A program made the translations under genes and the position numbers. Below the pieces are notes generated by a model. It ran no database searches. It was not told the DNA's origin and saw only the letters and a list, made by a program, of their open reading frames with translations. Positions 4,835 to 62,031 of a DNA stretch of 64,000 bases are shown piece by piece. The stretch spans positions 62,001 to 126,000 of the forward strand of contig CDRNVI010000005.1 of the NCBI GenBank assembly GCA_977017575.1, written 5' to 3'. Each line of letters begins with the position of its first letter. Within the stretch, counting starts at the first letter, position 1. The DNA is from Paramoeba atlantica (lineage: Eukaryota > Protista > Discosea).

Positions 4835-5368
4835 GTAGCCCTCGTGGGATAATCGTTTCCTAACCACACCGTTGTCGGCACAGGCCCACGTTAGCGCCCT
4901 CGGAAACAACTGATCTGGAAGCTGGTCGAGTCGACAGAGTCTATGCTCACGCCTAGCTCGCCGAGGGCTAGGTACCCCAAGTGAGGTAGTACACGGGTAG
5001 TGAATCTCCTCCCCGTCGACCAGCTTCCTGTTTCGCGACCGTGTCGCTGTCGACACAGGCCCGCGCCTGCGCCCTCCCATATAACAAGGGAAGGGTCCAC
5101 AAGTCAGGCCGTGGTGAGGTCGAAAGACCCGGTCCGGAACGCGCGGATGGATTGGGCGTGGATTGCTTCCTTTTTTATTATTATTGTTATCAGAATCATA
5201 AATAACTTAAGGCAGGTTGAATTACTAGTTTTGGGCTACAACATGTGAAATTGCTAATTTGATTGCTTGTTTACAAATCATATACCCCCCCAATGGACCT
5301 TCATGGTTCATGTATTGGGTAATATAGAGGCAATGCCGCGTTTCATACTTCTCCCCCCTTATTAATCG
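4835..5368 (+). mobile_element. 3'UTR-only retrocopy (module 4917-5150 plus shared tail) between two A-tracts
   Basis: Flanked by A-tracts 4814-4834 and 5369-5384; absent from the otherwise matching duplicate, which has a single A-tract at 10726-10743. Confidence 0.75.
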
Positions 5369-5514
5369 AAAAATAAAAAAAAAAGCGGCGACGGGGAGAA
5401 CTAGACGACGGAGGCCTCTGAGAGAGGAGAACGACACAGTGCAGGAAAACGATGTATCGGAAGACAAACAGTCGAATTTGCTGGATAAGCAAAAAAAAAA
5501 ACGATAAAGATTTA

Positions 5515-5549
5515 TTTAACGATAAAGATACAGTTTCTGTACCTTGTTG
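5515..5549 (+). other. Spliced-leader exon sequence (nt 5-39) at the 5' end of element A3
   Basis: TTTAACGATAAAGATACAGTTTCTGTACCTTGTTG; the ACAGTTTCTGTAC core and terminal TTG fall at the same positions as in the 39-nt trypanosomatid SL. Confidence 0.85.
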
Positions 5550-5588
5550 AATTTTTTACGTAGTATTCTCTCGGGGCCCAGCTCTTTT

Positions 5589-8500
5589 ATGACGCAAACC
5601 AATACTCCTCAGAGCCCCGCACGCTCGAACGAGGACCACCCCTCATTCCATATGAGTGCAAAGGAAGGAACTCTCAGCGTAGGCGCTCTCGCCGACGAAG
5701 AACGTGCGCACTCTCTCGGCAGTTGGGACCAATTCCAAGGAAACAAGCATTTGATTCGCGCTGTCAGCACATACGACGAACAACTCTACACTACACCAAT
5801 CCCGGCGAATATTCCTAAGGAATGGTTGGAACGCGCACGTCACATCTCCCAGGAAAAGGAAACCCCAGACACGGGCCACGTAGAGGCCGAAGACGAGGAG
5901 ATGCAGCACTGTGGAGTGAGAAGGCAGAAAATTACTCACGAGGCTACACCCACATCAAAGATCCCCGATGAAGCTCGGACGCTCAAATCCGCAGTGAAGG
6001 ATGCTCTTTCCCACCAAGGTCGAAACACTTCCCCATCGAAAGGAGTGACCAAAGCGGACTCGCGCTCGTCAAGGCGAACACCGGAGCCCCGGACATATTT
6101 CTCTTCACCGCGACACGCCGCAAACCAAAATAACTTCGCTGAAAAGACACAAACAAGAGAAGAGACTCGGGAATGTCCGGCCATGGGATGCACTTGGAGA
6201 AGTCTGCCGCACGGAGGGTCTTGGCAAGCGTTTTATAACCACGTCGCGTGTCGCCACGGAAACGGAGTTCCCGCTACCTGGTGGGATGCAGAAGGCCGAT
6301 TTCTTTGCAACTTATGCGGGCGCCATTATGACATCAACAAAAGGGAAGCTCATCCACAAGCCTGCAAAGGGAACGTTGCGAACCCCCAAATCCCATCGCG
6401 CGCAGCACACTCGAGCGACCCAAGCCACCTTCCGGGGACTCAAACTCATCACTCTGAACTTCCCTCGCTATCCTCTATCTGCACGCTGCGCCTGAACACT
6501 TGCAAGGACGTGCCTCCACGTTGCCGTCAACTGTGGGGAGAAATTATCACCAAAGCAGCCCAAAACGCAGTCACCGAAAACTCTACAGCCGCGTAGACCC
6601 TATTCGCCATGCTCCCCAAGTGCTTACTACCCGCCCCACACCGAGGAGGACGTAAGAACCACACAACTTACGCATCATACGTCCAGAAGTGCATGAACCG
6701 ATGGCTCGCGCAAGATTATGTCTCCCTATGGAATGAAGCAGTAGACAACGCACTCAAGAAACAATCTGTAGCCCCTACAACCGTTCACGACGAAGAGGAA
6801 AAGGCAGCTATCCGAGCAGAGCTTCTAGCTCGACAAGGCGAGTACTCTAGGGGTATGGCTGCACTCACGGCGGATGCTATGGCGCCTGACGACGAAGATA
6901 CACTCCTCAAACTTCAGAGCAAGCACCCGCCCCGACATCCAGACAGTGACATCATCGACTATACGCCTCCGCCCACAGCGCCCCCAATAATGGATGAACC
7001 CGTGGTAGCGAAAACTATCAAGAGCTTTCACCGGGGTTCCTCGTCCGGAACCATGGGTTTACGACCCGAGCACTTGCAAGCTGTACTCCTGGCGCACGTA
7101 GATAACACCGTGAAACCCCTTACTGCCCTTAAAAACCTCGTGAATCATCTACTAGCCGGGAAAGCACCCCTAGAGGTACAACCATATTTTGCGGGAGCCA
7201 GACTTTGCGCGCTTGAAAAGGGCGAAAATGACGTCCGCCCCATAGCAGCGGGAGAAACGATACGTCGATTGGTAAGCAAAGCGGCTTGCAATGCAGTGAG
7301 GAGCAAAGCCAGGGAATTTTTTAAGGGACTACAGTTCGGCGTCGCGACACCGGCCGGTTCGGAACGAATAATTCACACTTGCCGGCACGCAATGACAATT
7401 CATACGGACAACCCCGACATGGTATTATGTAAAGTCGACCTAAGCAACGCATTCAACAACGTTAGCAGAGCAACTTTCTTGAAACTTGTAGGCGATCATT
7501 TTCCGGAATTGTTCCCCTGGGCTAGCTGGTGCTATACGACAACTAGTGCTTTGACCTATCGTGACCACACACTCCTTTCGGATGAAGGCGTCCAACAGGG
7601 CGATCCCCTGGGACCACTTTTCTTTTCACTGGTCTCCTTGGAATTTGCAAAAGAAATCTATCACCAGGCCGACCTGGACTTGCAGCTATGGTACCTAGAC
7701 GACGGGATTCTCATTGGCAGGGCAGAAGACGTCAGGAATTCGTTGGATACAATCGCCAGAGTAGGTCCGCGATGGGGCCTATATCTGAACATGTCCAAGT
7801 GCGAAATAATCACCCCCCCTGCCTCGGCTAACGTTGTAACCATATTTCCGGACATACCCGATGCCAAAATAAACGTGTGCGGTAACTTTAGTGTCCTAGG
7901 AAGCCCAATTGGGTCCCCTGAGTACTGTACTGAATATCTGCTGACACACGCGGTTGAGCCCGCCGAAATGGCCCTTGATGCCATAACCAGAATCCGGGAC
8001 CCCCAGGTAGCCATGGCGCTAATTCGACAATGTGCTGGATTCTGCAAATTGGTACATGCTCTACGAACGACGCCCCCGCAATCAGTTATGAACCTCTGCA
8101 AGCGGCTCGACGACTTCCTAATGCACGCGGTCGAATCCACTCTATGTCCTTTGCCTCCCTCCGCACGCGCCCAAATTCAGCGCTTGAAAAGACACGGAGG
8201 TTTCGGTTTAAAATCGGCGACCGTGCACGCATCCTCCGCTTACGCCTCCTCTGTAGTTTTCGCGGCGGCCACGGACTCATGGGATGCTTCAGAAGTGGAG
8301 GGCTTTCTACAATCGATTGAAGACGTGAATTCGAAAGTTGGTATCAGTCTACTCGACTCAAACGGACTCGTGCGTTCCATCCCGCGCCATAAATGTGAAG
8401 AACTCTCCCCCAAAGCTCGCTTCACCAAGAGATCTCGCGAGGGAGAAACCAGACATCCCTTTGAACCCGCAAATCCGCCTTCTCTTCCTCGTGACCGCGC

Positions 8501-9455
8501 ATTGCCTCATTCCGAAGACTTTCTACACGATACAAACCCCCTTTACGCATCCGAAGATTGCGTTGACGCGGAGCCACCCGACTGGGCAAGTAATAGCGTC
8601 CCCCGCCAAAAAGACATAAGTTACGCGATCTCTGCCACAGAGTTCTCGCACGCATATGAAAACGCCGACGCCCGGACTCGCGCACGCTGGGCTTCTCAGT
8701 GTGGTAAAGGAGCAAGCAGCTGGGCGTTCGTAACTCCTTCCAGAGACACGGGCCACGCCTTTAACCCCACAGAATTCCGCATCCTATCCCGCTGGTGGTT
8801 AGGTGTGCCCGTGTACGGGGAAGAAGGTACATGTCCCAAGGGGAACTGCACACTCCCATTGGACATACACGGCGATCACGCTCTCACATGCAAGCACGGG
8901 GACGGTATCATCGGCCGTCACAACGCCTTGGCCGATCACTTTGCCGATACTTGCAGTAACGCACGCCTAGCTCCCCAACGGGAAAAAAGCCTCGGGAACC
9001 GGGGCCCCGGAGGCGCTCTGACTAGACCCGGGGACGTCTTCCTTCCGAGTCTCTTCCTCGGGAAACCTATCGTGCTTGACTTCGCGGTCACTCACGCCCA
9101 GCAATCTAAATACACGGACACAGTCCGAAATGCTAGCTGGGTGGCCGCGGGATCCTTCGCAGAGCATTATGCCTCAGAGCAGAAAGTCCGACAACGCCGT
9201 GAATCTGAAGATGCCGGAAGCGACTTCACAGCTATTGTGGTCGAGAGCTATGGCTCTTGGAGTGCCAGTGCTTTAGCCGTTCTCCGGAAGGTTGGAGAAC
9301 GAAGGGCAAAAGCGTCCAACGGTATCTTGACAGACGAGGCCTCTACGCTCCGTCTCGTGACCGACATGAACGTAACATTGATGCGTTGCCAGGCACGCAT
9401 GATGATTACGCGCCTGCCGGCTGTGGACCCTTTGCCCCCTTTAATCGAGCAATAG
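5589..9455 (+). mobile_element. Full-length CRE family A element A3 ORF (LsmAD-like, 2 Zn fingers, RT, CCHC, RLE) with in-frame TAG at 6594-6596
   Basis: ORFs 5544-6596 and 6609-9455 are in frame; the TAG replaces the conserved W of AWTL. RT motifs QFGVA, KVDLSNAFN, GVQQGDPLGP, WYLDDG; RLE RPGD..VLDFAVTH. Confidence 0.93.
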
Positions 9456-9503
9456 CACGATGACGGATGTGCAAGATGGACCGCTCAGCCGGAACTCGAA
9501 CAG

Positions 9504-9748
9504 CTGGTCCGGATGCTGGTCGATGCCGGCAGGGTCTATGCTCACGCCTAGTCCGCCAGGGCTAGGTACTCCAAGTGAGGTAGGACATGGGTAGGGAACT
9601 TTGTTCCTCCCCGTCGGCCAGCATCATGCTCCGCGACCGTGCCGCTGTCGGCACAGGCCCTTTGCTTGCGCCCTCTCGTACAACAAGAGAAGGGTTAACA
9701 AGGCAAGCTGGGAGAGGTCGAAAGACCCGGTCCGGAACGCGCGAATGG
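9504..9748 (+). ncRNA. Structured 3'UTR RNA module (type b)
   Basis: Homologous to type a with compensatory substitutions; second copy at 14863-15107. Confidence 0.75.
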
Positions 9749-9953
9749 TTCGGGGAAAGTCTGCCCCTCCTAGCCGAGGGAGAACTTACCCTCCCTGGAA
9801 AGCTGGTAAGACTGGTAAGGGGAAGTGGGTAAGATGGGAAAGCATATATTTACTAGTTTTATATTTTGCTCGTTTCCAAAATGGGGGGAAGTGAGGGAAA
9901 TAAGTTGAGCAAGTAGGAAAGTAAGTGAGAAAGTCATACCGTACATACAAAAA

Positions 9954-10007
9954 AAAAAACGTTGTCTTAATAAAAAACGTTGTCTTAATAAAAAACGTTG
10001 TCTTAAT
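9954..10007 (+). repeat. (AAAAAACGTTGTCTTAAT)x3 junction repeat; also 10554-10607 (x3), about 4675-4692 (x1) and reverse-complement at about 16862-16900 (x2)
   Basis: Direct reading. Confidence 0.9.
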
Positions 10008-10873
10008 ATAAAAAAAAAGGTAATATATACTTAGGGGGGATTAAATTGCTAGTTTTGGGCTGAGAAAAAAGGTACATCTGTGGAAAGAAAAAGAATTGCT
10101 AATTTGATTGCTTGTTTTCAAAAAAAAAAAAAAAAAATCTCACGCCTAGTCCGCCAGGTCTAGGTACTCCAAGTGAGGTAGGACAAGGGCTGGGAACTTT
10201 GTTCCTCCCCGTCGGCCAGCATCATGCTCCGCGACCGTGCCGCTGTCGGCACAGGCCCATTGCTTGCGCCCTCTCGTACAACAAGAGAAGGGTTAACAAG
10301 GCAAGCTGGGAGAGGTCGAAAGACCCGGTCCGGAACGCGCGAATGGTTAGGGGAAAGTCTGCCCCTCCTAGCAGAGGGAGACCTCACCCTCCCTGGAAAG
10401 CTGAAAAGATTGGTAAAGGGAAGTGGGTAAGATGGGAAAGCATATATTTACTAGTTTTATATTTTGCTCGTTTCCAAAATGGGGGGAAGTGAGGGAAAGA
10501 AGTTGAGCAAGTAGGAAAGTAAGTGAGAAAGTCATACCGTACATACAAAAAAAAAAAAACGTTGTCTTAATAAAAAACGTTGTCTTAATAAAAAACGTTG
10601 TCTTAATAAAAAAAAAGGTAATATGTACTTAGGGGAGACTAAATTGCTAGTTTTGGGCTGAGAAAAAAGATACATCTGTGGAAAGAAAAAAGAATTGCTA
10701 ATTTGATTGCTTGTTTTCAACTCGTAAAAAAAAAAAAAAAAAAGCGGCGACGGGGAGAACTAGACGACGGAGGCCTCTGAGAGAGGAGAACGACACAGTG
10801 CAGGAAAACGATGTATCGGAAGACAAACAGTCGAATTTGCTGGATAAGCAAAAAAAAAAACGATAAAGATTTA

Positions 10874-10908
10874 TTTAACGATAAAGATACAGTTTCTGTA
10901 CCTTGTTG
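10874..10908 (+). other. Spliced-leader sequence (nt 5-39) at the 5' end of A3 duplicate
   Basis: Identical to 5515-5549. Confidence 0.85.
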
Positions 10909-16742: not shown

Positions 16743-17094
16743 AAAAGAAAAAGAAAAAAAGAATATGCTTGGGAAAGGACGTGCAATACCCCCCATCCAC
16801 AAAAAAATTAGAACTTCAGTTATAGTATCCTAAATTTCATATCGTAATTAATTTTATTTTTTTTATTAAGACAACGTTTTTTATTAAGACAACGTTTTTT
16901 TTTATGTCATAAATGGAGATGTGACTGAGACCGTCCGAGATCGCTTAACCCGGTGTCGAATTATAGTTTTTTTTTTTTTTAAGCAATAAAATTAGCAATT
17001 TCATATTTTGGAGCCCAAAACTAGCAATTCGATCTCCCGTAAGTATAATAACAATAATAACAATAATAATAAAAACAAGCAATCCACGCCCAAT

Positions 17095-17334
17095 CCATTC
17101 GCGCGTTCCGGACCGGGTCTTTCGACCTCTCCACGGCCTGACTTGTGAACCCTTCCCTTGCTATATGGGAGGGCGCAGGCGCGGGCCTGTGTCGACAGCG
17201 ACACGGTCGCGAAACAGGATGCTGGCCGACGGGGAGGAGATTCACTACCCGTGTACTACCTCACTTGGGGTACCTAGCCCTCGCGGGCTAGGCGTGAGCA
17301 TAGACTCTGTCGACTCGACCAACATCCAGGCCAG
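17095..17334 (-). ncRNA. Structured 3'UTR RNA module (type a) of A4
   Basis: Reverse complement of 2289-2528. Confidence 0.75.
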
Positions 17335-17343
17335 AAGTTTTCC

Positions 17344-20300
17344 TTACTCTTCTTTGCCATACCCCACAAGTGCAGGGCCTGTGTTCGCCGAGGGGAGGCG
17401 AAGAACGAGCATACGCGCCTGGGAGCGCATGAGGGTGACGTTCAGACTTGTTAGTATTTGCTGTAACGCCCCCCCTTGCGAAAGTGTTCCACCTGTCGCA
17501 GCTTGGCCTTTCGAGACTTCCCGCAAGACCGACATAGCGGCCGGACTCCAGCATCCGTATGTTTCGACAGCCATAGCTGTGAACTTGGTCTTCGCTTCTT
17601 CAGCTTCCTCCCGTTGCTTCCGCTTGTGTTCGACGGCGTACCTCTCGGCGAATGACCCGGCTGCCACCATGTTAGCATCACGGACCAGGTCCGTATACTT
17701 TTGTTGCTGAACATGTGTGACAGCGAAATCAAGGACGAGGGCCTGACCGAGACCACCGTTCCGGACATAGACATCTGCGGGTCGCGTGAGGGCGCCGCCC
17801 GGACCCCTGTTTCCCAGAGAGACTTCTCTCTGTGGGCTCAACCCGGCCTTGCTGCATTCAGCGGAGAACTGTTCCGCTAGGGCGTTGTGCCTTGTAATGA
17901 TTCCGTGGCCGCACTTGCAGGCTAGCGCATGGTCCCCCCCAGGGCCGAGTGGGAGGCGACAATTCGGAATCGGGCAGTTGTGACCTTGAGGGTATATACT
18001 CTCCCCGAGCCACCAACGAATCAGAGTCCGAAATTCAGTAGGGGTGTAGGCATGACCGCAGAGAGTTGAGGGAACCGTGAAGGCCCAGTTGGATGCCCCG
18101 TCGCCCGTTTGTGAGAGCCACCTAGCCCGAGTGCGGGGATCCGCTCTTGCGTAATCTTCCTCAAAGTCTCTCGCTGAAATCGCATGACTGAGATCGCGTT
18201 GTCGAGGAATCGCCAAATCTTGAGAAAGGTCAATATCGGGGGAGGGCGAGAAGGGGCATCTCTTTATGACGGAGTCCTTGTGGATTTTCCCGGTAGATTT
18301 GTCCACCATACACCCCCCTACACGCCGGTTAATGTCCTCCACGGCGTAAGAAAAGCCCTCAGCCTCATTTGCATCCCATCGATCCTTGTCGGAAGCGAAA
18401 GCTACTGAAGCTACGTACGCTGAGGTGGCATGCATTTCCGCTGAGCGAAGGCCGAGACCGCCGAACTGTTTATTTCTTTGTGCTTGTCGTCGAGCCATGT
18501 CACTCAGTGGGCGACAAAACGTTTCAACCGTACGCTGAACGGCGTTGTCGAGTCTGCGACATAAGTCCAGTAGTTCGTCCGTCGGCGTCGTGCGAAGGGA
18601 GTAAACCATCTGGCAAAACCCTGTGCACTGTCGGATGAGAGAGAAAGCGACCTGAGGGTCCTCCAGTTTCTCGATCGCTTCAAGGGATTCCTCCGCCTGG
18701 GAAATCGCGCTGTCGAGGAGGAACTGACGGCTGTACGTCGTAGATCCGATGGGGCTTTCCAAGATGCTCAGATTACCTTCCATGTTGATGTTGAGCCCGG
18801 GAATGTCAGGAAAGTGGGTAGTTTGATGAGATGAGGAAGGGTGTGTGATTATTTCGCACTTGGACGGATTGAGGTTCAGACCCCACTTTGGCCCTCCAAT
18901 TTCGATGATATCTAGTGCGTGACGTACATCAGAAGCCTGGCCTGCAAGGACGCCATCATCAAGGTACCAGAGATTGAGATGAAGATCAGGAGCTCCGGCC
19001 TTAAGTTCTGCGGCCATTTCTCTCATGACGAGCGAGAACAAAAGGGGTCCGAGCGGGTCTCCTTGTTGTACGCCTTCAGAGGATTGAACTACACGTGCGC
19101 CGAATGTCAGGTTACTGTCCGAACTGTAGCACCATTCCACGAACGGGCTCAACTCAGGGAAATGATGCCGCGTCAAGGCCATAAAGCTATTTCTTGAAAT
19201 GTGATTGAAAGCGTTGCGAAGGTCAACCTTGCATAGCACAAAATCCTCGTTATTGATGTGGTGCGCAACCAGGCGCCTGCAAATGTGGATAACACGTTCG
19301 GCTCCTGCGGGCGTCGCCACTCCATATTGTTGATCTTTGAAGAGCGTTCTGGATTTAGCCTTTGCAGACAGACATCCTATCTTGCTCGCTAGTCGGCGGA
19401 AGGTTTCCCCTGCGGCAATGGGGCGGACATCACCCTGACCCTTGTGTAAGGCACATAAGCGTCCGCCGGCGAAGCAGTGTTGGACTTCAAGTGGTACTTT
19501 GCCCGCTAGCATATGACTAATAAGTTTCGTGAGCGTACCGAGCGGATCTGTCCTGGCGTCGTGATGGAATTGCACTGCTACTTGTAGGTGCTCAGGCCGA
19601 AGTCCGAGAGCTCCCCCTGAGGAACCGCGGTGAAAGCTGGAAAGCGCCGTAATGATGTCCTCTTCGGTTGCGGTGATCGGTTTAATATCGAAATCCAGTT
19701 CGTGCTTTCACGTACATTAACAAAGAATATGAAAAGATATATTAAGAAGAAATAGAACTGGAAATAGAACATAACGAAAATTCATTGAAATCGTCATACA
19801 TGTAGATCAGTTTCTCAAAGAGTACAAGTCTCATCACATCAGCACAGTTTGAAACAATATTCCGGAATTCCATAATCAAAGTAACTTGTGAACGGGAAGA
19901 CCCATCCCCTCAGCTCGCAGCCAACCAACCCTGCGAAAACGAGTGAAGCTTTACCCAAATAGAATAGTCACTAATACAGTCACATAAGAATAAAATCAAT
20001 TTCACGCGAAAATGCATACAGTTCATACACGTACATAATTATTAACAAACCCTATTCAAATATAATCCCTCCTGAATTTCAATCCGTAAACTTTTACAAA
20101 GAAGGCGTGGTAATCGGACTTGGACCCAGAAGTCGAGACGGGTGTTTCGCCTGGAGCTTTTGATAAGTCGTGTCATCGTTTGGGGCAAGTGGTTCGGATG
20201 TCAACGCAGTCATTGCGCGGGAAAGTTCACCATCTCGCACGAGGCGTACTGCTCGGAGCGCAGCTTTCTGATCCTCCTCTTCAATGCTCTGAGCCTGTGG

Positions 20301-21764
20301 AGAACTTTTCCGCTTACGCTTCAGGCTTGACAAGGCCTCGTTCCAAAGTGGTAGAAATTCCTTGTTCTTCCATCTGGAAAGGCATTTGCGGACGTGGGAG
20401 GCGTATGAGGCTTTACCCTTGTCCCCGCCGCGTCGTGGTGCTGGAATTACACATTTAGGTAACATAGCCAGCAGGGTCCAAGCCTCGATGGTGTTGTCAC
20501 GTACGGCCGCCGCCATGCATTCGGTAAGTGTTTTCGCCCATTCAGGCTTACAGCTGTTTGGGATATTTTTGCAGGTATTGACGGACAAGGCGCATACTGA
20601 TGATAGGGACGGCAGATCTTCCACTGTTGGGGCGCCTTGCATAGTGTTCTCGCTAAGCTGCTGCTCAGGGTGGTGCTCAGTAACGGAATTTGGGGGCGGG
20701 ACGGGGTAATCTTTGGAGCCAGCGGAGTAACCATGCGAAGGTTTGGGTGACGGCGTGCGAAACCTGCAGTGCATCTTGTGTGTTGCTTGCTTGCGCATGG
20801 AGTAGTGCTTTTTGCAACCCGGGCATAGGAATCTTCCCTCCTCTGTCCACCATGATTCCGCCACTTCTTCCCCATGTCTGTTAGCCACGTGGTTGTAAAA
20901 GGCTTGCCATTGATCGCCGTGCGGCCCTGTTTCCCAGGTACATGAATCCAAGGGGCATTTCCTGGGCCGACTTGGTGTGCTAATAATGGGGGCGGGCGTG
21001 CTTTTAGATGACTCGGCGTTTCGGGAGGTTAATGGGCGTCGGTGTCGCTTGAGACTTACTGAAGTGTCCGCATGGGGCTTTGTGTCCGGTTTTTTCGGAG
21101 ATGATGCCGCAGACAGATTGCTGTCACTTTCAGCCTCAGGAGTGTATGGCCTAGGGGAGTTGGAACTTGATTGTGCGGTGTCACGGTCGTCGCTGTCGGC
21201 CCCGGACTCAGCACACAATTGGGAAAGGGAGATGCTCTTGGGTCGCTTCTTCTTTTTCCGTCCTTTTCCGCATCCATTCACAGACACAGTAAGGTCTTCA
21301 GGAGTGAGATCGGGGAAGAGCAATTTATCTTTTTCGTAATTATATTCGTTGTCGTATGACCTCCGGATATGTCGTTCGCACCTCTCCTTCACAGCCTTAT
21401 TTGTGGTTTTTGATAGGCTGAGTGAAGAAGATTCTGCTCCCGCAAACTGGAATTCGAAGTCCTCAGTTGGACGGACGCTGGAGAAAAGTTCCTCTTCCGT
21501 GCTTGTCTGCTGTTGCCCTGTATCTGGGGTCTCACCTTCCACAGAGTTCGTAATGCTGAGTGCAATCTCGTCCGCTCGCCGTAAAGATTCAGCTGAAGGA
21601 TTAGGTGGGAGGGGTGTAGTGTATAAGTCTACATGGTACGTACTCTTGCCTTCAACAAGGTCCTTGTTTGCGTCGAATTGGTCCCAGCAGCCGAGTGTGT
21701 GTGCTTTCACCTCGCGCTCGAAGTTCGAGACCTGCTTCGCCTTAGATCGAGTTAAAACAACCAT
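17344..21764 (-). mobile_element. Full-length CRE family A element A4; ORF open (1337 aa) once the insertion at 19690-20096 is removed
   Basis: MVVLTRSKAK start, LsmAD-like motif, Zn fingers; TTG|GAT joins in frame to DIKPITATEED..FHRGSSGG; complete RT and RLE motifs. Confidence 0.9.
19690..20096 (-). mobile_element. TSD-less non-autonomous insertion (family X), 407 bp
   Basis: Left end TAAAAGTTTACG-N4-GAAATT and right end GGATTTC match the other family X copies; removal restores the host ORF. Confidence 0.75.
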
Positions 21765-21800
21765 GGGGCGTAAGAGTGAGATAAAGAAAAGAAAATAATT

Positions 21801-21839
21801 CAACAAGGTACAGAAACTGTATCTTTATCGTTAAAGATT
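21801..21839 (-). other. Complete 39-nt spliced leader at the 5' end of A4, preceded by a partial SL stutter
   Basis: Reverse complement of AATCTTTAACGATAAAGATACAGTTTCTGTACCTTGTTG; an extra AATCTTTAACGATAAAG lies at about 21845-21861. Confidence 0.88.
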
Positions 21840-28887: not shown

Positions 28888-29957
28888 GGGTACGAGGACA
28901 CTTCCGTGAGTACTCATCGAAACGCCCACGTGTCAAAACGAAAATCATCGAAACGAAAGAAACTCATCGAAGGTGTTTTTAATTACTTTTGAGGTGGTAG
29001 CTGCATTTTCGACTAAAAAACAAATACACAATCCTGCGGAAGTGGCAGACATAGGTTCTCAGTGCGCGACCCGCGCGCCAGCGCGATTTTCATTTTCCGT
29101 GCGTTCAGTATCCTACACTTCACTATATACGTTGACAACGCCTGCGTAGCGAAAACTACGAAATTCAGTGAGCTTCGCAAATTGCTTCCCACTAACGACG
29201 AACAGGGGAATCCTACGCGGGGTACGGCTCAGGCCCGCTCACGCGGGCCCTCGCCGTTTCGCGGCCGCGCGCACCCCCGCTCACGCGGGGGCCCCCGCGC
29301 GGCCAAAATGGGTACTAAAATTTGTTATCAAGGTAGTTGGGCTTCGCAAATTGCTTCCCACGAATCTAGAGAGAAGCACACGTACAATAATCTTTAACGA
29401 TAAAGATACAGTTTCTGTACCTTGTTGATTATTTACTTTTTTTACCTTTCATGGGAGTGTTCACACGCTCCAAAGCAAAAGAATCAGGAGTAGCTCCTGA
29501 GATTTTGCCGCTCCCTCGTGCCCGATGGAAAAAGAAGGCCGTGATGCCAACTCATCCGCCCGCCGTGCTAATATCCACCACCACCGCATGGAGCGCGCGG
29601 GTCGCCAAAAAATATAATTCTGTCCCAGGGCTACGCTCACAGTTGGGCCTTGCTCGCAAAAGGGGGCTTTTGCCTCCAGAAGTGGGCTTCGCTCAAAGTT
29701 GGGCCTTGCCTCCAGACACGTAAACTAGGTGTCGTAGTATAGGAAAACAAATACACAAACCTGCGGAAGTGGCAGACACAGATTCTCAGTGTCGCCGCTT
29801 TCTTATTTTCATGTTCTCGATTTTTTTCTTTCCAAAGCAATTAAAATCACCTCCGATGAGAAGATTGACGTTTCGATGAGTCACCCTGTGACACGTAGGC
29901 ACTTCGGTGAGAAATCATCGAAGTGTCTCAAAAACTCACGGAAGTGCCCGTGGAGCC
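28888..29957. mobile_element. Non-autonomous Merlin/IS1016-like TIR element 1 (1070 bp, 8-bp TSD ATATTATT)
   Basis: TSD at 28880-28887 and 29958-29965; 23-bp TIRs (18/23 identical) starting GG; superfamily inferred from the termini only. Confidence 0.75.
29389..29427 (+). other. Complete 39-nt SL followed by the 5' end of a family B ORF (MGVFTRSKAK)
   Basis: Exact SL match, preceded by non-poly(A) sequence. Confidence 0.88.
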
Positions 29958-30534: not shown

Positions 30535-31954
30535 GGGGAGGGGGGGCACTCGATGAATATTCATCGAACGGACAGTGCGTTCGATGAATATTCATCGAAC
30601 AGGACATCCTGTTCGATGAATGGATTGCAGTACGACCCGTTCGATGAATCATTCATCGAACAGGATGTCCTGTTCGATGAATGAAAACGCATTTTTTTTT
30701 GTAAAAAAAAAGCTCGTTTCGGTCTGCATCATGCTCCTGGCTGCTACCTTGATCCGTAAGACAAAAACAAATCCGAAACGTTATCAAAAAGCGGAAGGAT
30801 TCTTAAAACTATTGCCTCATAAGTTTACAAAGATAAAATCATAACTTACAAATACACAAACCTGCGGAAGTGGCAGACACAGGTCCTCAGTGCGCGACCC
30901 AAAAAATATTGGGTTGGGGGTACGTTCGTTGTACTCAACGAACTGCCGGATTTTCGTTGAGTACTCAACGAACGGAAATTTACGGTGCAAGTCAAGGACT
31001 TTTGCATATGTCAAGGACTTTTGTGGAACACCCAAGAATTTTTTTTGATTTTCATTTTCCGTGCGTTCAGTATCCTACACTTCACTATATACGTTGACAA
31101 CGCCTGCGTAGCGAAAACTACGAAATTCAGTGAGCTTCGCAAATTGCTTCCCACTAACGACGCACAGGGGAATCCTACGCGGGGTACGGCTCAGGCCCGC
31201 TCACGCGGGCCCTCGCCGTTTCGCGGCCGCGCGCACCCCCGCTCACGCGGGGGCCCCCGCGCGGCCAAAATGGGTACTAAAATTTGTTATCAAGGTAGCT
31301 GGGCTTCGCAAATTGCTTCCCACGAATCTAGAGAGAAGCACACGTACAATAATCTTTAACGATAAAGATACAGTTTCTGTACCTTGTTGATTATTTACTT
31401 TTTTTACCTTTCATGGGAGTGTTCACACGCTCCAAAGCAAAAGAATCAGGAGTAGCTCCTGAGATTTTGCCGCTCCCTCGTGCCCGATGGAAAAAGAAGG
31501 CCGTGATGCCAACTCATCCGCCCGCCGTGCTAATATCCACCACCTCCGCATGGAGCGCGCGGGTCGCCAAAAAATATAATTATGTCCCAGGGCTACGCTC
31601 ACAGTTGGGCCTTGCTCGCAAAGGGGGGCTTTTGCCTCCAGAAGCGGGCTACGCTCACAGTTGGGCCTTGCTCGCAGACGGGGGCCTTGCTTGCACACTT
31701 GGGCTTCGCTGACAGTTGGGCCTTGCCTCCAGACATGTAAACGAGATGGTAATGTTCAAATTCCCCCCAAAAAAAATCGAGACGAAAAATTCGTGCAGCA
31801 GTGCCCGTTGGATGAATGATTCATCGAACGTACTGCCCGTTCGATGAATATTCATCGAACGGGACGCCTGGTCATCGAACGGGACGCCGTTCAATGAATA
31901 TTCATCGAACGCACGGTGCGTTCGATGAATTTTCATCGAATGCCCCCCCTGGCC
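30535..31954. mobile_element. Non-autonomous Merlin-like TIR element 2 (1420 bp, 8-bp TSD GTTAAATG, TIRs over 60 bp)
   Basis: TSD at 30527-30534 and 31955-31962; TIRs GG..AGGGGGGGCA(C/T)TCGATGAA.. built of palindromic TTCGATGAATATTCATCGAA units. Confidence 0.8.
31351..31389 (+). other. Complete 39-nt SL followed by a family B 5' end
   Basis: Same cassette as 29389-29427. Confidence 0.88.
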
Positions 31955-40316: not shown

Positions 40317-40336
40317 CTTTTTTTTTTTTTTTTTTG

Positions 40337-41000
40337 CAAATAATTGGGGGGAATAGTATTGGGTCTAACTTTTTATGTATGGAGTCCAACTTTTCCACAA
40401 TTTCCACACTTACGGCCCTTCACTTTCCCTTACTCCCCATACTTTCCACACCTACTCCTCTTAGCCCTCTCGTACTTCTCTTCCCTCACTCCCTACCCCA
40501 CTCACCGATCCGCATGCACCCAGGCCCGTATGGTCCTGCACCTCCGCTCCCACCCCGTTAGCAGTAATAAATACTTTTGGTTGCCGTACGAGGGTGGGAG
40601 ACGTGGAGGCCACGAAACACAAAGACGTCGTCACGCCGAGGGAGAAGAGCGCGGAGAGAGACACGGGGCGACTGACGCAGGGGCGAGAGGAGGCGAAGCA
40701 CGGGCCCATCTGCCAGGAACTCTGCCCCCACCCCGTGAGCAAGTATTGTATACTTTTGGCTGCTGACACGGGGGTGGGGGACGCGAGAGAGAAACACAAC
40801 AGGGGGGCAAGCGCACTGCGGAGGGAGGGTGAGGTGGGGGGATGCGGCGCAGGGGGTGATGGGACGAGACGGGGAAGGGGGATGCCGACAAAAAGGAGTG
40901 TATTTGAGGGGGGTGCCCTCCCATGGTCTGGAAGATGGTGTATGGAAGAAAAGGGGAAATAATTCAACAAGGTACAGAAACTGTATCTTTATCGTTAAAG
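40337..41000 (-). mobile_element. SL-headed, polyadenylated non-coding element S, complete copy (SL at 40965-41000)
   Basis: SL nt 4-39, about 630 nt with no consistent ORF, then poly(A); further copies at 48110-48598, 62055-62671 and partial at about 42860-42995. Confidence 0.75.
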
Positions 41001-42840: not shown

Positions 42841-43129
42841 TCAATAATATCAATAATAATACTTTTCCACAATTTCCACACTTACGGCCCTTCACTTTCC
42901 CTTACTCCCCATACTTTCCACACCTACTCCTCTTAGCCCTCTCGTACTTCCCTTCCCTCACTCCCTACCCCACTCACCGATCCGCATGCACCCAATCACT
43001 GACTAACGAAAGGGCCGTCCGCACGTGGACGTGGGGAGGCTGCCGGGGTATAACCATTTCCGGCTCGGCCGTCTTATCCGCGTCCATGTTGTTGAGTATG
43101 TGTCGTGGGCTTTTTTTTTTTTTTTTTTT

Positions 43130-43370
43130 TTTTGCGATTAATAAGGGGGGAGAAGTATGAAACGCGGCATTGCCTCTATATTACCCAATACATGAACCAT
43201 GAAGGTCCATTGGGGGGGGTATATGATTTGTAAACAAGCAATCAAATTAGCAATTTCCCATGTTGTAGCCCAAAACTAGTAATTCAACCTGCCTTAAGTT
43301 ATTTATGATTCTGATAACAATAATAATAAAAAAGGAAGCAATCCACGCCCAATCCATCCGCGCGTTCCGC
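43130..43370 (-). repeat. Family A 3' terminal tail fragment with poly(A)
   Basis: Reverse complement of about 5135-5368. Confidence 0.8.
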
Positions 43371-43557
43371 GGCTTTTTTTTTTTTTTTTTTTTTTAGCCC
43401 GTGGAGCGCATATATTATATACGCGCCGATTACTATCAAATGTGAGACATGTTCACCTTCCCCCCTTCTCTCAATTTTCAAAGAGAAACTATCCCGAAAA
43501 TGAAATCTATATAATTTTATAAGCTGACTCAGCTTATAGTGATATTGTGTTTAGAAC

Positions 43558-46500
43558 TTATATACTATATTCTTGAGTTTGCGTGCAGCCGTCTAAGTAT
43601 TTCTTTAGCTGCGCATAAATCCCTAATCCATTAAGCTCCTGAATCGTCAGCTTCATTTCGAGTTCGACCTGTTTCCTGTTTAGCATGGCCGCGTCTGCTA
43701 GCGAGTGTACCAAGTTCTGCGTATTGCGGTGCAAAGCGCCTCCTGCCAGTACGGGTAAACATTGAAATGAGTCTTCACGAATTAAGTTCGTACGTACATA
43801 TGTGTTGGACTTTCGCTGCAGCGCGTCATTCATGAGCTGTGTGCATTTCTTTCCACGATTAGACATTGAGAGTTCGTGAATAACTGTCAGATCATAGAAG
43901 ACCGCACCCGTGTTCCAATAGATCACGAGATCGGGGCCAGACCGACAAAGTTTTTTTCCTGCACAAGTCTTCTGATGTACCAACTGGTTTTCCGGACTGA
44001 TTGTGGATCGGCAAGCGATGCACTTCCACGTAGAAAAGTTTCTAGGTTCCGTTTCACATGGGATGCCTGCTTTCACGCATAGACGATGTAAAAATCCGAC
44101 AAGTGAGTTATGTTTCACGGTCGTATTTATACCTGAACATTGAGCACAGCCTGGGATATGGGTGAGGGCGTTTCGGTTATTGAGGAGAATACCGCACCCT
44201 GGACACAATAGACTGGTAGGTAGATCTGGGTGTTGGGCATTTAGTCGTGGCATAATCGCGAGTTTGAAGAGATGGGAAGGGATGTACTTCGCGTTGGAAA
44301 GGATCCAGTCGCTGTTTCCTTTGAAGGATGTGGCTTGTAGAATGGGCTTAATGTCGGGATCCGTTTGCAACTTTTTCAATACTTCGACATGATGAATGCT
44401 GGTGGAAGCTTTTTCGTCCACTGGTATGACTTTCATTGTCGAGTTCTTAGGAATAGACGGGTGTGATGGCACCGCGTTGTCGATCCGAGCTGAAAAAGAG
44501 TTTCGGCGCTCAAGAACCGAGTAGCGGGATGCCACATATGCCGTCTCCCTAAGGGGACTGCTCGCTGCCAAACCCATTCCTCCCTTCTTAACGGGTAATC
44601 GTACAATTTTCATTTGATCAGGAGAGAGTGGACCAATCCAAGTCTCTACCACATTTTCAACCTCTTGATCGAATTGTGATGATGCTTTCTCTGTTGTTTC
44701 GGGCGGGTGAACACGAATCAGGTATTGTTGACGAACATTGGCACATTTTGCTAAAAGAATCATCGATATATTATTGATGCCCATTCGTTTTAGCCGCCGA
44801 AAAGCTGTGACCTGCTTCTCTAGTTGACGCAAAAGTCGTTCACTTATTGTGTTGTTTTCTCCAATATACGCTCCGAGTACTTTGACCGCTTCGTCCTCCG
44901 ACTTTACACCTTGGGTGCTCAGCGAATTCGGTATGGAATTTCCGGATTTTCCTCTGAACCAAACGCATTTTGCCTCGGCTAGTTTCACCTGTTTTTCTTC
45001 TAGGAGACCTTTGAGCCTAAAGAATGCTTTCTCCAGTTCGGTTGAATCTCGAGAGACTAACGTTATATCGTCAATGTATGCATTTATTTCAATACCTGGA
45101 AATTCGGAGGCCAGTGTCTCGAGTATTGGTTGACAGAATACGCAAAAGTAAAGACTAGCCAGAGCGGACCCTTGCCGTACACCTGCTGAGATCATTATAA
45201 TGTCCGTCAGGCTGCCATCGGAGCCATAAAATAAAAGTTCGGAAGCATTTGAATATTCGGCCGCAAAGAACCTTTGAAAGGGTTTCAGTGTAGCGAAAGC
45301 AAAAACGCACTTTGCAATTTCCTCTCGTGAGGGTGAGTTGAATGCATTTTGCATATCCACAGTCAGGATTGAGTGTCCGTCAAGCCAGCGGTCCCGCAAC
45401 TTGTGTACGATTCGTTCGCACCCCGCTTGAGAGAATACGCCTTGTTGCATTGGTGCAAAGAGGGGTTCTAGTGACTTTTCGTATCTTTGCAGCAGAATTA
45501 TTCCAGCTAATTTGCTAAATATTTCTCCAATAGCTACTGGGCGTACTCCCCCGTTGGGCTTGTCGATGGCTACGAGTCTTGCCCGATTTAGACGCTGTAG
45601 AACTTGTCTAGATAGGAATCCGTTGATCAGATCGCTCATCATGTGACAAAGACTATTGCAACATGGCTCGTCGTCTATGAGAAGTCTAACGATGCTGTCG
45701 GTCGTACCTGTAGGCCCAGGGCTCACACCTTTTGCCAGTCGTCTACTTGCACATCTTAATTCTTGTACGGCTATTCCTGCGATAATCGGTGCATCTTCCG
45801 GAACTTTGAAATTGCAGTTTTGTTCTGGATGAAGTGCACGTAGTTTTTGGACTTTTTCTTGATCAGTCAACGTGCTCTTCTGAAAAGAACAGTCGAAAAT
45901 CCTTGAAGCCTTCGATGTACAGTTTTCTAGCACCAAACGAGTGGCCCGTTTGATTGCTCGCTTGTCCTCATGAAAAAACTCGTCTTCTGGTTGATTGTGT
46001 TCAACTGTCTCTTGTTGTATGGGTCTTCGCCGCCGTTGTCTACTATTGGCTTGACGCACGGAAGCTAATGAAAGTTTCATTGGAAATCAACGACGAGAGT
46101 CTTCCACATACATTAAAAACAACTTGTAAGAAAACATTGTTGTAAGAGCTAAAGAAATATATCGCTGATATCCTGAATCTCATCCACTGCCTATATTTAC
46201 TAGCTAAAGAATATTCGTATTATTGATGCAACTATCCGGATGTATATAGCGCGCAAACTATTTCAAAAGCATAATATAAAATTATAATACGTAGTGAAGG
46301 GGCTTTGCCCCCTGGCACGCAGCCACCACCCCAAAAAAAAAATAACTTGTAAGAGAATGTAAGCTATAAAACTATACACAATCTACATAAAGTTATAATT
46401 TAAATCATATTAAAAGATATAATAGAATTCATAATCAGAGATTATGTGCCTCGTAGGGCCATTCGAGAAAAAGGAGTCTTTTCAAATTCGTATTTCTTCT

Positions 46501-48071
46501 CGTCTAAATTTCCTCTCGTAAACTATCACAGACAAAACTTTATTCCAAATTTGATTTCTTTGTACGTAGTCGCTTTCTGCATAGATGTGCATGATGTCCC
46601 TGTATATGGCAATCACACTGGAGATAAAATCAGGACTAATGGTTTTCGCGGTTGGAATTGGGAGATGGTCTACGTCTTCAGCTCCTGTGTCCAGCTTAAG
46701 CGCTCTGGCCTTTTTAACATGTGTTTCTTCGCGGGTCTCAATAGGAAGGTTCTCGTCAATGGCTGGAGGAGCTCTGTACCAACGGATCTGATATACACGG
46801 ATATTTTCTTGCGGAGGAAGAAAACCTGGAAAACTTTCTTCTGCACGATGGCCGAACAGACCTTTATAGCTCAAATGTAGTTTCGACGCCCCGGTCCGAT
46901 TCGCGGATCGTGTTACGGTTCCTTCGGAGATGTTCAAGGCGGTTTGTTTATCGAATGTCCACGCCACTGTGCATTTGGTTCCTTTTTTTATTGAAGAACA
47001 AGACTTCTGTATGCGCTCGAAAGGAATGGGGAATTCGGTGTCTGGATTTATCGATTTTATGATGCCACCGATGTGGTTGTCTTGTTCCGGATTTCCTTCG
47101 CTATAAAGTATGCTGATGACTTGATTTGTTGTTTCGGTTGGTTTGTCCTTTTCTTGTGTGTCTGGCGTGATGCAGTCGTAGAACTCGGTGTTACTTCCAT
47201 ACTCCTTGGTTTTGGGGCCCGGAGTCGTGCTAATTACCTGTATTTCGCTCGATGTGTCAGGTCGGAAACCTTCGTCGCCGTTGGGCGCAATTTCGCCGTA
47301 CTGAATCGGTTCGTTGTTTTGTACGCGTCCGTTTTCCTGGACGTTCTTTGTACTCTTGTTGTGCTCGTTTTCCTTTTGGATGATAGCATCCTGCAGAGCT
47401 TTAGCCTTCTTACGGTAACTGTCCATGGCAACGGCCGACGGATTTAACGGTCGTAAAACGAGTTCATCCAGAGTAGTGGGATCTTTTGGTGGAGGGGTGG
47501 CCGCCTGAGCGTACGTTGGTTCCTTGCTCCAGTTCGTAAATGCTGTGTTCCGAGCGGTGTTCGTTCTTATTTTGATGCATCTTTCTGGGTGACGAATGGT
47601 TGGGCTCTCGTCTTGCGACACTTTGTCAGCTCTTGTCTGAAGAAGGTTGAGTTGTTTGTTTCGCCGATTGAAGAAATTTGAAGACAGCAGTGCGTTCTTA
47701 ATTGTGACTTTGCAGTCACTTTTCGGCAGTGGGGTCGGCGATCGACGCATCGACGGAGGAGGAGATTGTGGACACTCAGATGGCGTTGATGGTGGTGATG
47801 GCGGCGGTAGTGGCGGCGGAAGTGGCGGTGAAGTAGGTGACCGCGATGCGGCGGGGACGGGCGATGGAAGAGACGGAGTTTCAGTGGACAAAGTCGTGGG
47901 TGGTGAGGGCGGCGGGGGCGGCGGGGGCGGCGAAGGAGAAGCGCTCGGTTCGGACGGAGCCTCAGGCGGTTTCTCCTCAATTGTTTTCTTCCTGCGACGG
48001 GTCGGAGGTAGAGGCTGTACGACGGGTGCTACTCCCGTTTCTTTCGCCCGGCTCCGCGTGAACATGCCCAT
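43558..48071 (-). mobile_element. Full-length family B element B7; single 1355-aa ORF once family X at 46083-46528 is removed
   Basis: MGMFTRSRAK start, Pro-rich linker, conserved barrel-like domain; KVLS|AMKL rejoins (1543+2525=4068 nt); full RT and RLE. Confidence 0.9.
46083..46528 (-). mobile_element. Family X copy, 446 bp
   Basis: Ends TGATAGTTTACG..GAAATTTAGACGAGA and TCTCGTCGTTGATTTC; no TSD. Confidence 0.8.
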
Positions 48072-48109
48072 GAAAGTGAGAAAGTAATAGAAAATAAAGC
48101 AACAAGGCC

Positions 48110-48598
48110 CGTATGCACCCAGGCCCGTATGGTCCTGCACCTCCGCTCCCACCCCGTTAGCAGTAATAAATACTTTTGGTTGCCGTACGAGGGTGGGAGA
48201 CGTGGAGGCCACGAAACACAAAGACGTCGTCACGCCGAGGGAGAAGAGCGCGGAGAGAGACACGGGGCGACTGACGCAGGGGCGAGAGGAGGCGAAGCAC
48301 GGGCCCATCTGCCAGGAACTCTGCCCCCACCCCGTGAGCAAGTATTGTATACTTTTGGCTGCTGACACGGGGGTGGGGGACGCGAGAGAGAAACACAACA
48401 GGGGGGCAAGCGCACTGCGGAGGGAGGGTGAGGTGGGGGGATGCGGCGCAGGGGGGTGATGGGACGAGACGGGGAAGGGGGATGCCGACAAAAAGGAGTG
48501 TATTTGAGGGGGGTGCCCTCCCATGGTCTGGAAGATGGTGTATGGAAGAAAACAACAAGGTACAACAAGGTACAGAAACTGTATCTTTATCGTTAAAG
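48110..48598 (-). mobile_element. Element S copy (SL at 48563-48598) fused to the 5' end of B7
   Basis: Matches 40510-41000; joins CCTTGTTG (SL 3' end, 48100-48107) through a CCT microhomology. Confidence 0.75.
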
Positions 48599-53255: not shown

Positions 53256-53597
53256 CCTCCAAACCCCAGGATCCCGTCCGCTTTTTTTTTTTTTTTTTTT
53301 TTAACAAGCAATCAAATTAGCAATTTCATATTTTGGAGCCCAAAACTAGCAATTCGATCTCCCGTAAGTATAAGAACAATAAAAACAATAACAATAAAAA
53401 CAAGCAATCTATGCCCAAGCAAACCCGAAACGAGCAAACCTCAACCTGCCACCTCTCTCACTACCCCGGACCTTATTGCCCGCAGGACCGTCCGACGCTG
53501 GCCACAACCCCCCTGCAGAACCAGGAACCAAGCAAAGCAACCACGACACTTACCGCCCCACCCTTGCCCACGAGGTTTTCCACCTCTTGGCCGCTTG

Positions 53598-57587: not shown

Positions 57588-57620
57588 AGGGCGTAAGGAT
57601 GATATAAAGGGAAAAGAAAT

Positions 57621-57656
57621 CAACAAGGTACAGAAACTGTATCTTTATCGTTAAAG
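57621..57656 (-). other. Spliced leader (nt 4-39) at the 5' end of A7
   Basis: Exact match, preceded by an A-tract. Confidence 0.87.
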
Positions 57657-57919
57657 GTTTTTTTTTTATTTTTTTATTTTTACGAGTTGAAAACAAGCAA
57701 TCAAATTAGCAATTTGAAAATTTAACTTTTTTTTTTTTTACTAAAAACTAGCAAACAATTCTACCCGAAATCCACCCCTAATCAAATCACTCCCGCACCA
57801 AAACTAAGACCCGTGACGGCACGTCGGTTAGTGACTTGGTACCCCCCCTTGCCCCCCCCCCTTTCGCAGAGAAACACCCTCCACCCCCCTGCGGCTGTTA
57901 AATGATTGGGGGGACCGAA

Positions 57920-60900: not shown

Positions 60901-61963
60901 CACTGCTCGTCTAGGGCGACGGACGGCTTTGAGGAGAGGAATGGCGGAACATGCAGATCTTGTCGTGGGTTTCCCGTTTGCCTTGATCATAATGTTTATT
61001 GCAATCATGACACCTAAAACGTCCTTCGTCTTTCCACCACTCGTCTGGGACCTCATCACCGTGTCTGTTTGCTACGTGGTTGTGGAATGCCTGCCATTGG
61101 CCCCCGTGGGGCCCTGTTTTCCAAGCACATCCCTCGAAGGGACATTTTCGCGTATTTTCATGCGTGGTGTGTGTTTTTTCTATCGCACAGTTTTGGGTTG
61201 GGGTCGGTTCGGGGGCATTGTTCATTGTTTCAGCTTTGGGGGCGTCAGGGGAGGTAGTTTTCGACACCTGCTGGGGACGTTTACGTTTGCCTACAGCCGT
61301 TTTCGGGGTTAACTTCTTCAGGGGTGATTCAGCCGGAGAGCTGTGAACACTTGTTGACGCATCTGTGGAGTCACGGTCATCACTGTCGCCCCCAGACTCG
61401 GTGCATAACTGGGTATGTAGCTGGGAAAGTGAGATCCCTTTAGGGCGCTTTTTCTTTTTCCTTACTTTGGTTCCACCGCTCAACGAAAAGTCGAGGTCTT
61501 GAGGCGTCAGGTCGGGGAAAATTAATTTGTCGTCGTCATAATTGTATTCGGTACGAGCGATCCCCCGGTTGTGGCGCTCGCATTTCTCCTTCACAGCCTT
61601 GTTTGTAGATTTCGATTGGCTGAGTGAAGAAGGAGCGGCCCCTTCGAACTGGAAAACGGAATTCTCGGTGGGACGGACGCTGGAAAATAATTCTTCTTCC
61701 GAGCTCGTTTGCTGACGCCCTGTGTCTGGTGTCACGCCTTCGATGGAGTTCGTAATGCTGAGGGCAATGTCTTCGGCCCGTTGTTCTAATTCTGATGAAG
61801 GATCCGGCGGAAGTGGTGTCGTGTACAGCTCTTCCTTGTATGTGCTAGCGCCTTTAACCAGGTCTTTGTTTGCCTGAAACTGGTCCCATGAACCGAGCTT
61901 GTGCGCGCCCGCTTCGCGATCAAAGTTGGATTCCTGTTTTGCTTTAGAGCGAGTTAGAACCAT
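57920..61963 (-). mobile_element. Full-length family A element A8 with one in-frame TAG at 60911-60913
   Basis: ORFs 60911-61963 and 57920-60877 share a frame (33-nt gap with no other stop); all motifs present. Confidence 0.92.
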
Positions 61964-61992
61964 GGAACGTGAGAAAGATTAAGAAAATAAAT

Positions 61993-62031
61993 CAACAAGG
62001 TACAGAAACTGTATCTTTATCGTTAAAGATT
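61993..62031 (-). other. Complete 39-nt SL at the 5' end of A8
   Basis: Exact match; the first AA is ambiguous with the preceding A-tract. Confidence 0.87.

Follow-up and report, generated by a model that had tools for sequence, protein, structure and literature searches.

The stretch analysed here, 64,000 nt of contig CDRNVI010000005.1 (in the following, the window), consists almost entirely of retrotransposons, as revealed by Pfam, self-comparison and alignment, and the copies of these elements that are complete at the 5' end begin with a 39-nt sequence which we judge to be a genuine spliced leader (SL) exon of the kinetoplastid type. It heads two families of long interspersed nuclear elements (LINEs), named A and B, and a short element, S. 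These SL heads most probably arose by full reverse transcription of mature, trans-spliced and polyadenylated element mRNA; that the SL arrived on the RNA by trans-splicing is what we infer from the DNA. Ten further loci of the same assembly (ENA), picked via relatives of the proteins encoded by the second open reading frame (ORF2) of families A and B, were included, bringing the sample to ~270 kb in all.

SL heads and their junctions

The 32-nt core of the repeat, AACGATAAAGATACAGTTTCTGTACCTTGTTG, matched 10 times in the window with 0 mismatches, the chance expectation being 0.00 (100 shuffles). Four of the sites are on the plus strand (5518, 10877, 29396, 31358) and six on the minus strand (21801, 40965, 48563, 57621, 61993, 62635), and the kinetoplastid signature, the 13-mer ACAGTTTCTGTAC, occurred at the identical 10 sites. 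The complete SL reads AATCTTT followed by the core, making 39 nt, and the copies in the window reach 5' as far as nt 1-6. All 10 near-complete copies that a preliminary description of the sequence had listed were thus found in their places (Table 1), and its statement that they run into a T-rich 5' untranslated region (5'UTR) and not into a GT intron held for 10/10 copies in the window and 18/18 in the wider sample. GT was next in 0/10 window copies; nine continued with A(A)TT and T-rich sequence and one with TACCTTGTTG, and downstream of each a T-rich stretch of 23-45 nt preceded an ATG.

The junctions at 5518 and 10877, like those at 29396 and 31358, have identical flanks and lie within tandem segmental duplications of 5359 bp and 1962 bp, respectively. 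Each pair therefore represents duplicates of one event, which leaves eight independent junctions in the window; 10 extra SL heads from the 10 other loci raised the number to 18. All 18 stop exactly at CCTTGTTG, that is, at the terminal TTG, and then change into a family-specific T-rich 5'UTR. No extra bases were seen on this side (0/18), and SL followed by GT was absent from the ~270 kb. The first UTR bases were identical between independent copies (two each of A2b, S and B), and the position of the junction was held within one base across subfamilies that are ~30% diverged. A longer leader, hinted at by the first UTR base always being A, was ruled out by four heads starting with T.

The upstream side of the 18 heads is ragged. 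A poly(A) tract precedes 14 of them and no poly(A) the other four; the start of the SL copy varies between nt 1 and nt 6, with nt 4 the commonest; and 7 of the 14 poly(A) junctions contain filler (G, GCAG or CTTACTTT) or a partial second SL piece with filler, the latter at 5502 and 21845 of the window and in the loci L001, L006 and L011. Such a messy upstream side together with an exact element side is expected if the RNA that was copied began with the SL, which had been spliced to the element RNA. The first four SL positions vary too (AATC, AACTC, C for T). In Diplonema papillatum, mRNA cDNA loses the first SL base owing to cap modifications (PMC10161547 supplement), and the variable start of the copies may reflect a similar first-base loss or a hypermodified cap region. 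TTGTTTT upstream of the SL was considered as a shared promoter motif and dropped, as it is present in only 1/18 heads, and no convincing target duplications were found at the heads outside poly(A).

The presence of the SL coincides with 5' completeness: it is found on each copy with homology up to the start of the family, and the remaining copies, which begin further downstream, have none; one copy short of just 9 UTR nt has no SL. The SL follows only about one quarter of the poly(A) tracts. After the 3' ends of A-type and B-type elements and their poly(A), a wide range of sequences was seen, among them at least 20 internal element parts in the same orientation, which means that these are 5'-truncated insertions without an SL. 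One such insertion has its empty site in the window: at 10726-10743, an A-type 3' end with A18 runs into gcggcgacgg, and in the twin at 4814-5384, A21, a truncated element of 550 nt and A10 precede the same gcggcgacgg. The pair demonstrates insertion into a poly(A) tail. Only one of the two units of the 5359-bp duplication later took this insertion. We also considered whether partial 5' SL pieces might be a target SL split by insertion, which was ruled out since the matching 3' SL part is absent after the element's poly(A).

The preliminary description had proposed two origins for the SL heads. Reverse transcription of trans-spliced mRNA together with its SL agreed with all of the DNA evidence. 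The other, insertion targeted to the SL as in SLACS, CZAR and CRE, would make the flanking SL target DNA or a target-site duplication instead of element RNA, and it did not stand; we regard it as very improbable. In these families, most poly(A) tails lead into non-SL sequence, the 5'-truncated copies have no SL in front, the empty and filled sites show insertion into a poly(A) tail, and intron sequence follows the SL in no copy. Shifts and filler at the poly(A)/SL junction are the behaviour of a 5' junction and not of a 3' junction defined by cleavage, and it would be a coincidence that a duplication stopped at the last base of the exon in many families. The order poly(A)-SL-GT, named beforehand as the sign of target duplication, was absent from the 18 junctions in the ~270 kb. 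What SL targeting has in its favour is the enzyme, as both A and B end in a C-terminal restriction-like endonuclease (RLE) with the CCHC/RHN/E/PD..D motifs typical of site-specific LINEs, and the solved structures closest to either family are those of R2 proteins; in addition, poly(A) abuts the SL in the arrays, and trypanosomatid elements of the CRE clade insert into SL RNA genes (PMC12278014). The same SL, however, also heads a LINE with an apurinic/apyrimidinic endonuclease (APE), reverse transcriptase (RT) and RNase H on another contig of the assembly (L002), so that the cause must be sought in a property of the host and not in the target choice of one element.

Head-to-tail units of poly(A), SL and cDNA-like sequence look like concatenated cDNA, and we therefore considered an artefact by assembly of cDNA concatemers or chimeric reads into the contig. 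This is hardly credible, as nesting, 5' truncation, tandem duplication that includes the flanks and a divergence of up to 30% are seen among the units, and the same structures are present on 10 other contigs. The elements are also covered by contigs from three further runs, one of which (X1 at 62622) spans the 5'UTR of the S copy S2 into the SL; these DNA-run contigs (X1-X3, 57400-62800) break at SL and poly(A) repeats, so that the direct span of a junction is at most 12 nt.

Table 1. SL copies, SL-headed elements and associated features in the window
Feature	Position	Strand	Remarks
SL copy nt 5-39, heads LINE A1 copy 1	5515..5549	+	preceded by A11, partial SL CGATAAAGAT (5502-5511) and 3 nt filler
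SL copy, second unit of 5359-bp tandem duplication	10874..10908	+	not independent
SL copy heading LINE A2a	21801..21839	-	upstream: A10, partial SL nt 3-17 (21845-21859), filler
Complete 39-nt SL (AATCTTT...) heading ~330-nt 5' fragment of A-group element	29389..29427	+	no poly(A) before
SL copy, second unit of 1962-bp tandem duplication	31351..31389	+	same junction as 29389
SL copy nt 4-39, heads short element S1	40965..41000	-	directly after A27 of upstream element
SL copy nt 4-39, heads LINE B	48563..48598	-	directly after A25; then 10-nt SL 3'-end repeat TACCTTGTTG (48553-48562)
SL copy nt 4-39, heads LINE A2c	57621..57656	-	C before; after poly(A) of A2b
SL copy heading LINE A2b	61993..62031	-	after poly(A) of S2
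SL copy nt 3-39, heads short element S2	62635..62671	-	after A18 + filler CTTACTTT
Internal CCTTGTTG (SL nt 32-39) within B	48100..48107	-	exactly where homology to A-group 5'UTR + ATG starts
550-nt 5'-truncated element without SL, inside poly(A) tail	4835..5384	+	empty site = duplicate 10726-10743
LINE A1: SL, 5'UTR, ORF1 (LsmAD-like + CCHC), ORF2 (RT + RLE), 3'UTR, poly(A)	5515..10137	+	
LINE A2a, SL to poly(A)	16967..21839	-	
LINE B, SL to poly(A), ORF2 = RT + RLE	43111..48598	-	
LINE A2c, SL to poly(A)	53282..57656	-	ORF1 and ORF2 in one 1342-aa ORF
LINE A2b, SL to poly(A)	57658..62031	-	first 250 nt 100% identical to copy at L004 2258
S1, short SL-headed polyadenylated element	40318..41000	-	first 493 nt of B + other 3' end
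S2, short element	62030..62671	-	97.7% identical to S1
Tandem segmental duplication of SL-headed units and junction flanks	5369-15220		period 5359 bp
Tandem segmental duplication of SL-headed units and junction flanks	29085-31679		period 1962 bp

The leader exon and the elements that carry it

The 39-mer has the features of an SL exon, namely a length of ~39 nt, the motif ACAGTTTCTGTAC and a terminal TTG, and in these respects it fits the SLs of kinetoplastids and diplonemids, as had been suggested before. It shares GATACAGTTTCTGTAC with the SLs of Trypanosoma cruzi and Leishmania and AACGAT..ACAGTTTCTGTAC..TTG with that of D. papillatum. An exact-string search of the literature found the 3' half of the SL in no paper and the shared 16-mer only in trypanosomatid SLs. 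Scanning of metagenome contigs with the 3' 22-mer of the SL returned a single contig, L007 (Ga0316204_10168667), which derives from a close relative or from the same lineage. Positions 1-568 of L007 contain an SL exon starting with AACTTT and continuing into an intron (GTATGAGAAGCTTCGAAC.. / GTATGAGAAGC.., beginning GTATGAG) that is cut by the end of the contig, and ~400 bp from the exon, on the other strand, there is a 5S rRNA gene (98 bits). An SL RNA gene beside 5S rRNA is the classic euglenozoan arrangement. An exon followed by a GTATGAG intron beside 5S rRNA in the contig of a relative argues that in this lineage the 39-mer is a true SL exon.

In the assembly itself, an intron copy was detected at L004 7418-7495, which has the same 18 intron bases as L007 and a further 50 nt with two hairpins (z = -5). 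The whole piece (L004 7398-7495) reads TT and GTATGAGAAGCTTCGAAC.. after a poly(A), is preceded by a stutter of TGAGAAGC and ends in a short A run. Since it sits after poly(A) and ends in such a run, it appears to be a 5'-truncated retrocopy of the intron half of the SL RNA. Rfam assigned no SL RNA family to L007 or to the L004 intron copy and recognised only the 5S rRNA, and a tRNA scan of L007 gave no match. The true SL RNA gene, with the SL followed by GT, which the preliminary description had recommended to look for, was accordingly found in the metagenome relative and not in the ~270 kb of the assembly, where only the intron retrocopy occurs.

These data also bear on the idea that master copies reside in SL RNA genes at the exon/intron boundary and are driven by the SL promoter without any trans-splicing, the window copies being their off-target progeny. 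The RNA of SLACS reportedly starts at +1 of the interrupted SL RNA gene, and an endonuclease of the RLE type and a precise nt 39/40 junction would be in line with such masters. Many families, including the APE-type LINE, would nevertheless need masters at the identical base, and the only junction of poly(A) and GTATGAG observed, at L004 7418, resembles a 5'-truncated retrocopy with stutter. We consider this explanation quite improbable, if somewhat less so than SL targeting.

Within the window, the elements lie mostly in same-strand head-to-tail runs, and the longest stretch without similarity to element proteins measures at most 2.6 kb (1-64000). Features of non-LTR (long terminal repeat) retrotransposons were found throughout: ORF1 and ORF2 with RT, 3' poly(A) and frequent 5' truncation. 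Family A includes A1, A2a, A2b, A2c and the ~330-nt head fragment at 29389, the 29396/31358 head being assigned to the A group. Its ORF1 encodes an LsmAD-like domain (Ataxin-2/Pbp1), with E-values from 2e-4 down to 7e-8, plus a CCHC motif, and its ORF2 an RT followed by the RLE. Frames matching LsmAD are located at 5544-6596, 60911-61963, 20094-21806 and 53598-57626 of the window. Family B ORF2 has the same architecture at ~24% identity to A. An alignment shows C742, C747, H757 and C761 as invariant, then RHN, E792, R806 and D824; Pfam recognised only RVT_1 on ORF2 and no APE domain in families A and B. Element S (~650 nt) consists of the first 493 nt of B and a different 3' end.

The SL had initially been described as heading several unrelated families. 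For the window this has to be revised, given that A and B are distantly related LINEs, both with RT and RLE, and S shares 493 nt with B, although elsewhere in the assembly a LINE of the APE type is headed by the SL as well. A clade name could not be assigned to the LINEs, because protein searches yielded unnamed proteins, nearly all from the same ENA assembly, and the Atlas only 'RVT_1' clusters; no named CRE, SLACS or CZAR sequence was among the protein-search matches. For B ORF2 (43558-46080, minus strand), only three distant metagenome matches (24-28% identity) were obtained outside this assembly, out of 5.8 billion proteins.

Formation and renewal of the SL heads

In the process that we favour, the mRNAs of the LINEs would be trans-spliced and polyadenylated like other mRNAs, and the element proteins would use their own mature mRNA as the template for target-primed reverse transcription, which would start mostly where poly(A):poly(T) tracts of older elements are nicked. 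On reaching the 5' end of the RNA, the RT would copy the SL into DNA, so that complete products would start with the SL joined at nt 39 to the UTR and early stops would lack it. Repeated landing in poly(A) tails would build head-to-tail arrays in which poly(A) lies against the next SL, for example at 62.8-53.3 kb (X, S2, A2b, A2c).

As the chief alternative, we considered a template jump, according to which the element RNA is not trans-spliced and the RT jumps at its 5' end to a free SL exon or another SL-bearing RNA. Reverse transcriptases of the R2 type are known to jump end-to-end between templates, and for L1Tc of T. cruzi, LINE transcripts that start at an internal promoter and are not spliced have been reported. 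The partial SL pieces and the fillers point to frequent switching onto SL sequences, and TGAGAAGC, which corresponds to nt 4-11 of the SL RNA intron, served as filler at two poly(A) junctions of L004, including that at 7056. The partial pieces begin at CTG|TACC, C|TGTACC or similar, or are 5' pieces upstream of a full SL; none begins after AAAG or ACAG, and no stacked relics cut at an internal AG of the SL were seen. Yet the SL/UTR junction is exact in 18/18 cases, and the junctions made by the same enzyme on the other side have extra bases in about half; a jump that is not obligatory would not put the SL on all 5'-complete copies; and the junction position is conserved across ~30% diverged subfamilies. 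We therefore rate a template jump as improbable, though less so than SL targeting or masters in SL RNA genes.

Two unusual loci may be mentioned in connection with the partial pieces. At L009:7405-7446, five stacked partial SL 3' ends (CTGTACC, TGTACCTTG, TACCTTGTTG) precede a T-rich UTR and an ATG, and the borders of the units are not AG. At L010:3170-3260, an SL head (3219) lies outside poly(A) between direct repeats of at least 45 nt that are 6.8 kb apart, and the downstream repeat continues with ATCTAG where the other one has the SL. Such an arrangement points to an element of the LTR or tyrosine-recombinase type, with terminal or split repeats, that was likewise copied via trans-spliced RNA.

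The SL core is 100% identical before A2a, A2b and A2c, whereas the adjacent 600 nt are only ~72% identical, which implies either that each cycle supplies a new SL from the host pool or that the SL is under strong selection. Old copies, with ~78% identity to their family, carry a decayed SL, and the SL thus seems to decay after insertion like the rest of the copy. Two candidates for SL-less sources (L003 9025, minus strand, and L010 1497, plus strand) turned out to be such old copies of ~78% identity, their upstream 39 nt resembling a decayed SL and not an acceptor.

Several observations weigh against copying of trans-spliced mRNA. SL-less source elements with an AG acceptor, the expected sign of trans-splicing, did not materialise, as no SL-less copy with a polypyrimidine-AG before the UTR was present in the ~270 kb. 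An AG is also missing between SL and UTR in the SL-headed copies, although the exact junction would have to be regenerated in each generation, and relics of 16 or 22 nt, as expected from re-splicing at the internal AGs of the SL, were found at 0/18 heads. The partial SL pieces at the junctions show template switching among SL-bearing RNAs and keep the template jump alive as an origin. Besides, the sole RNA-like run (X5) gave no contigs on 57400-62800, and the 64-kb window holds no recognised host gene.

A return of SL-headed DNA copies into the cycle, by whatever route, is evident from the heads of a pair of B lineages, the stack in L009 and an SL 3' end inside B. LINE B and a diverged relative (~52% identity over 623 aligned nt, higher only within the first ~150 nt) have SL, TACCTTGTTG and UTR in common. 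The internal CCTTGTTG of B is probably the relic of an older SL head, and the A-group-homologous ATG that follows (48071-48069) is in frame with the start of ORF1 at 48524. B looks like an older SL-headed element that has gained a new 455-nt leader and a new SL. Its ORF1 has a 151-codon N-terminal extension (48069-48524, minus strand), whose reading frame crosses the leader that S has as well, then the relic SL end and the former 5'UTR, and is continuous with the ancestral start MGMFTRSRAKE.

It is conceivable, if unlikely, that SL-headed copies are themselves the active sources, with the SL re-used as a heritable 5' end or a fresh SL added at the non-AG boundary TTG|UTR. The lack of any SL-less source among the copies seen, the SL with TACCTTGTTG in two B lineages and the relic SL of B are compatible with it. 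Re-use of the SL would mean that transcription starts at SL nt 1 or that the RNA is processed back to nt 1. If this were true, the LINEs would have adopted the host leader as a promoter-free and acceptor-free route to a capped mRNA, and poly(A) tails would be self-renewing landing sites that build co-transcribed trains.

Significance and comparison with known systems

Reverse transcription of trans-spliced mRNA would make the SL a natural tag that marks where the copied RNA truly began. As far as DNA alone can tell, several classes of LINE in this euglenozoan most likely have their RNAs processed as host mRNAs, with the mature mRNA as the transposition intermediate. The tag sorts full-length from truncated insertions at single-base resolution and may record the behaviour of the RT on meeting a heavily modified cap. 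With the SL as its first sequence, a copy no longer has a splice acceptor, which would call for rare master loci that still bear one or for some novel means by which the exact 5' end is restored. There is also a practical side: genomic SL matches here are mostly not SL RNA genes, and mapping of trans-splice sites by soft-clipped reads would miss or misplace sites at genome-encoded SLs.

The elements resemble SLACS, CZAR and CRE1/2 of the CRE clade in their RT, RLE and zinc-finger motifs, their poly(A) and their association with the SL (PMC12278014). However, members of that clade interrupt SL RNA genes at one fixed position of the exon; here, the SL is never found before an intron, and insertion was mostly into poly(A). 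With target-primed reverse transcription of the L1 type, the elements share poly(A), 5' truncation, messy 5' and clean 3' junctions and nesting in A-rich targets. They differ from it in that the endonuclease of A and B is an RLE and not an APE, and in that the full-length 5' end would be set by a leader added by the host and not by an internal promoter.

Nearest in lineage are the SL fragments of D. papillatum. The genome of this euglenozoan harbours hundreds of SL-exon fragments outside SL RNA genes, which were ascribed to reverse transcription of mRNA by retrotransposons (PMC10161547 supplement). In that report, the explanation was given as a hypothesis only, and the fragments lie in intergenic regions and introns. 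In contrast, the SL described here has a different sequence, is complete and is present on every full-length LINE copy examined, and the anatomy of its junctions has been worked out.

Nearest in principle are the retrogenes of dinoflagellates, which are tagged by relics of the DinoSL as marks of reverse transcription of trans-spliced mRNA (PMC6050394, PMC5585692, PMC12014239). Like our elements, they start with an intron-less genomic SL and end in poly(A), and partial SLs can be stacked. Unlike them, the tagged units here are retrotransposons (LINEs with RLE or APE and a short derivative) of a euglenozoan with a 39-nt SL; their SL heads are complete, and the partial pieces are not bounded by the internal AG of the SL and thus do not look like simple relics of re-splicing.
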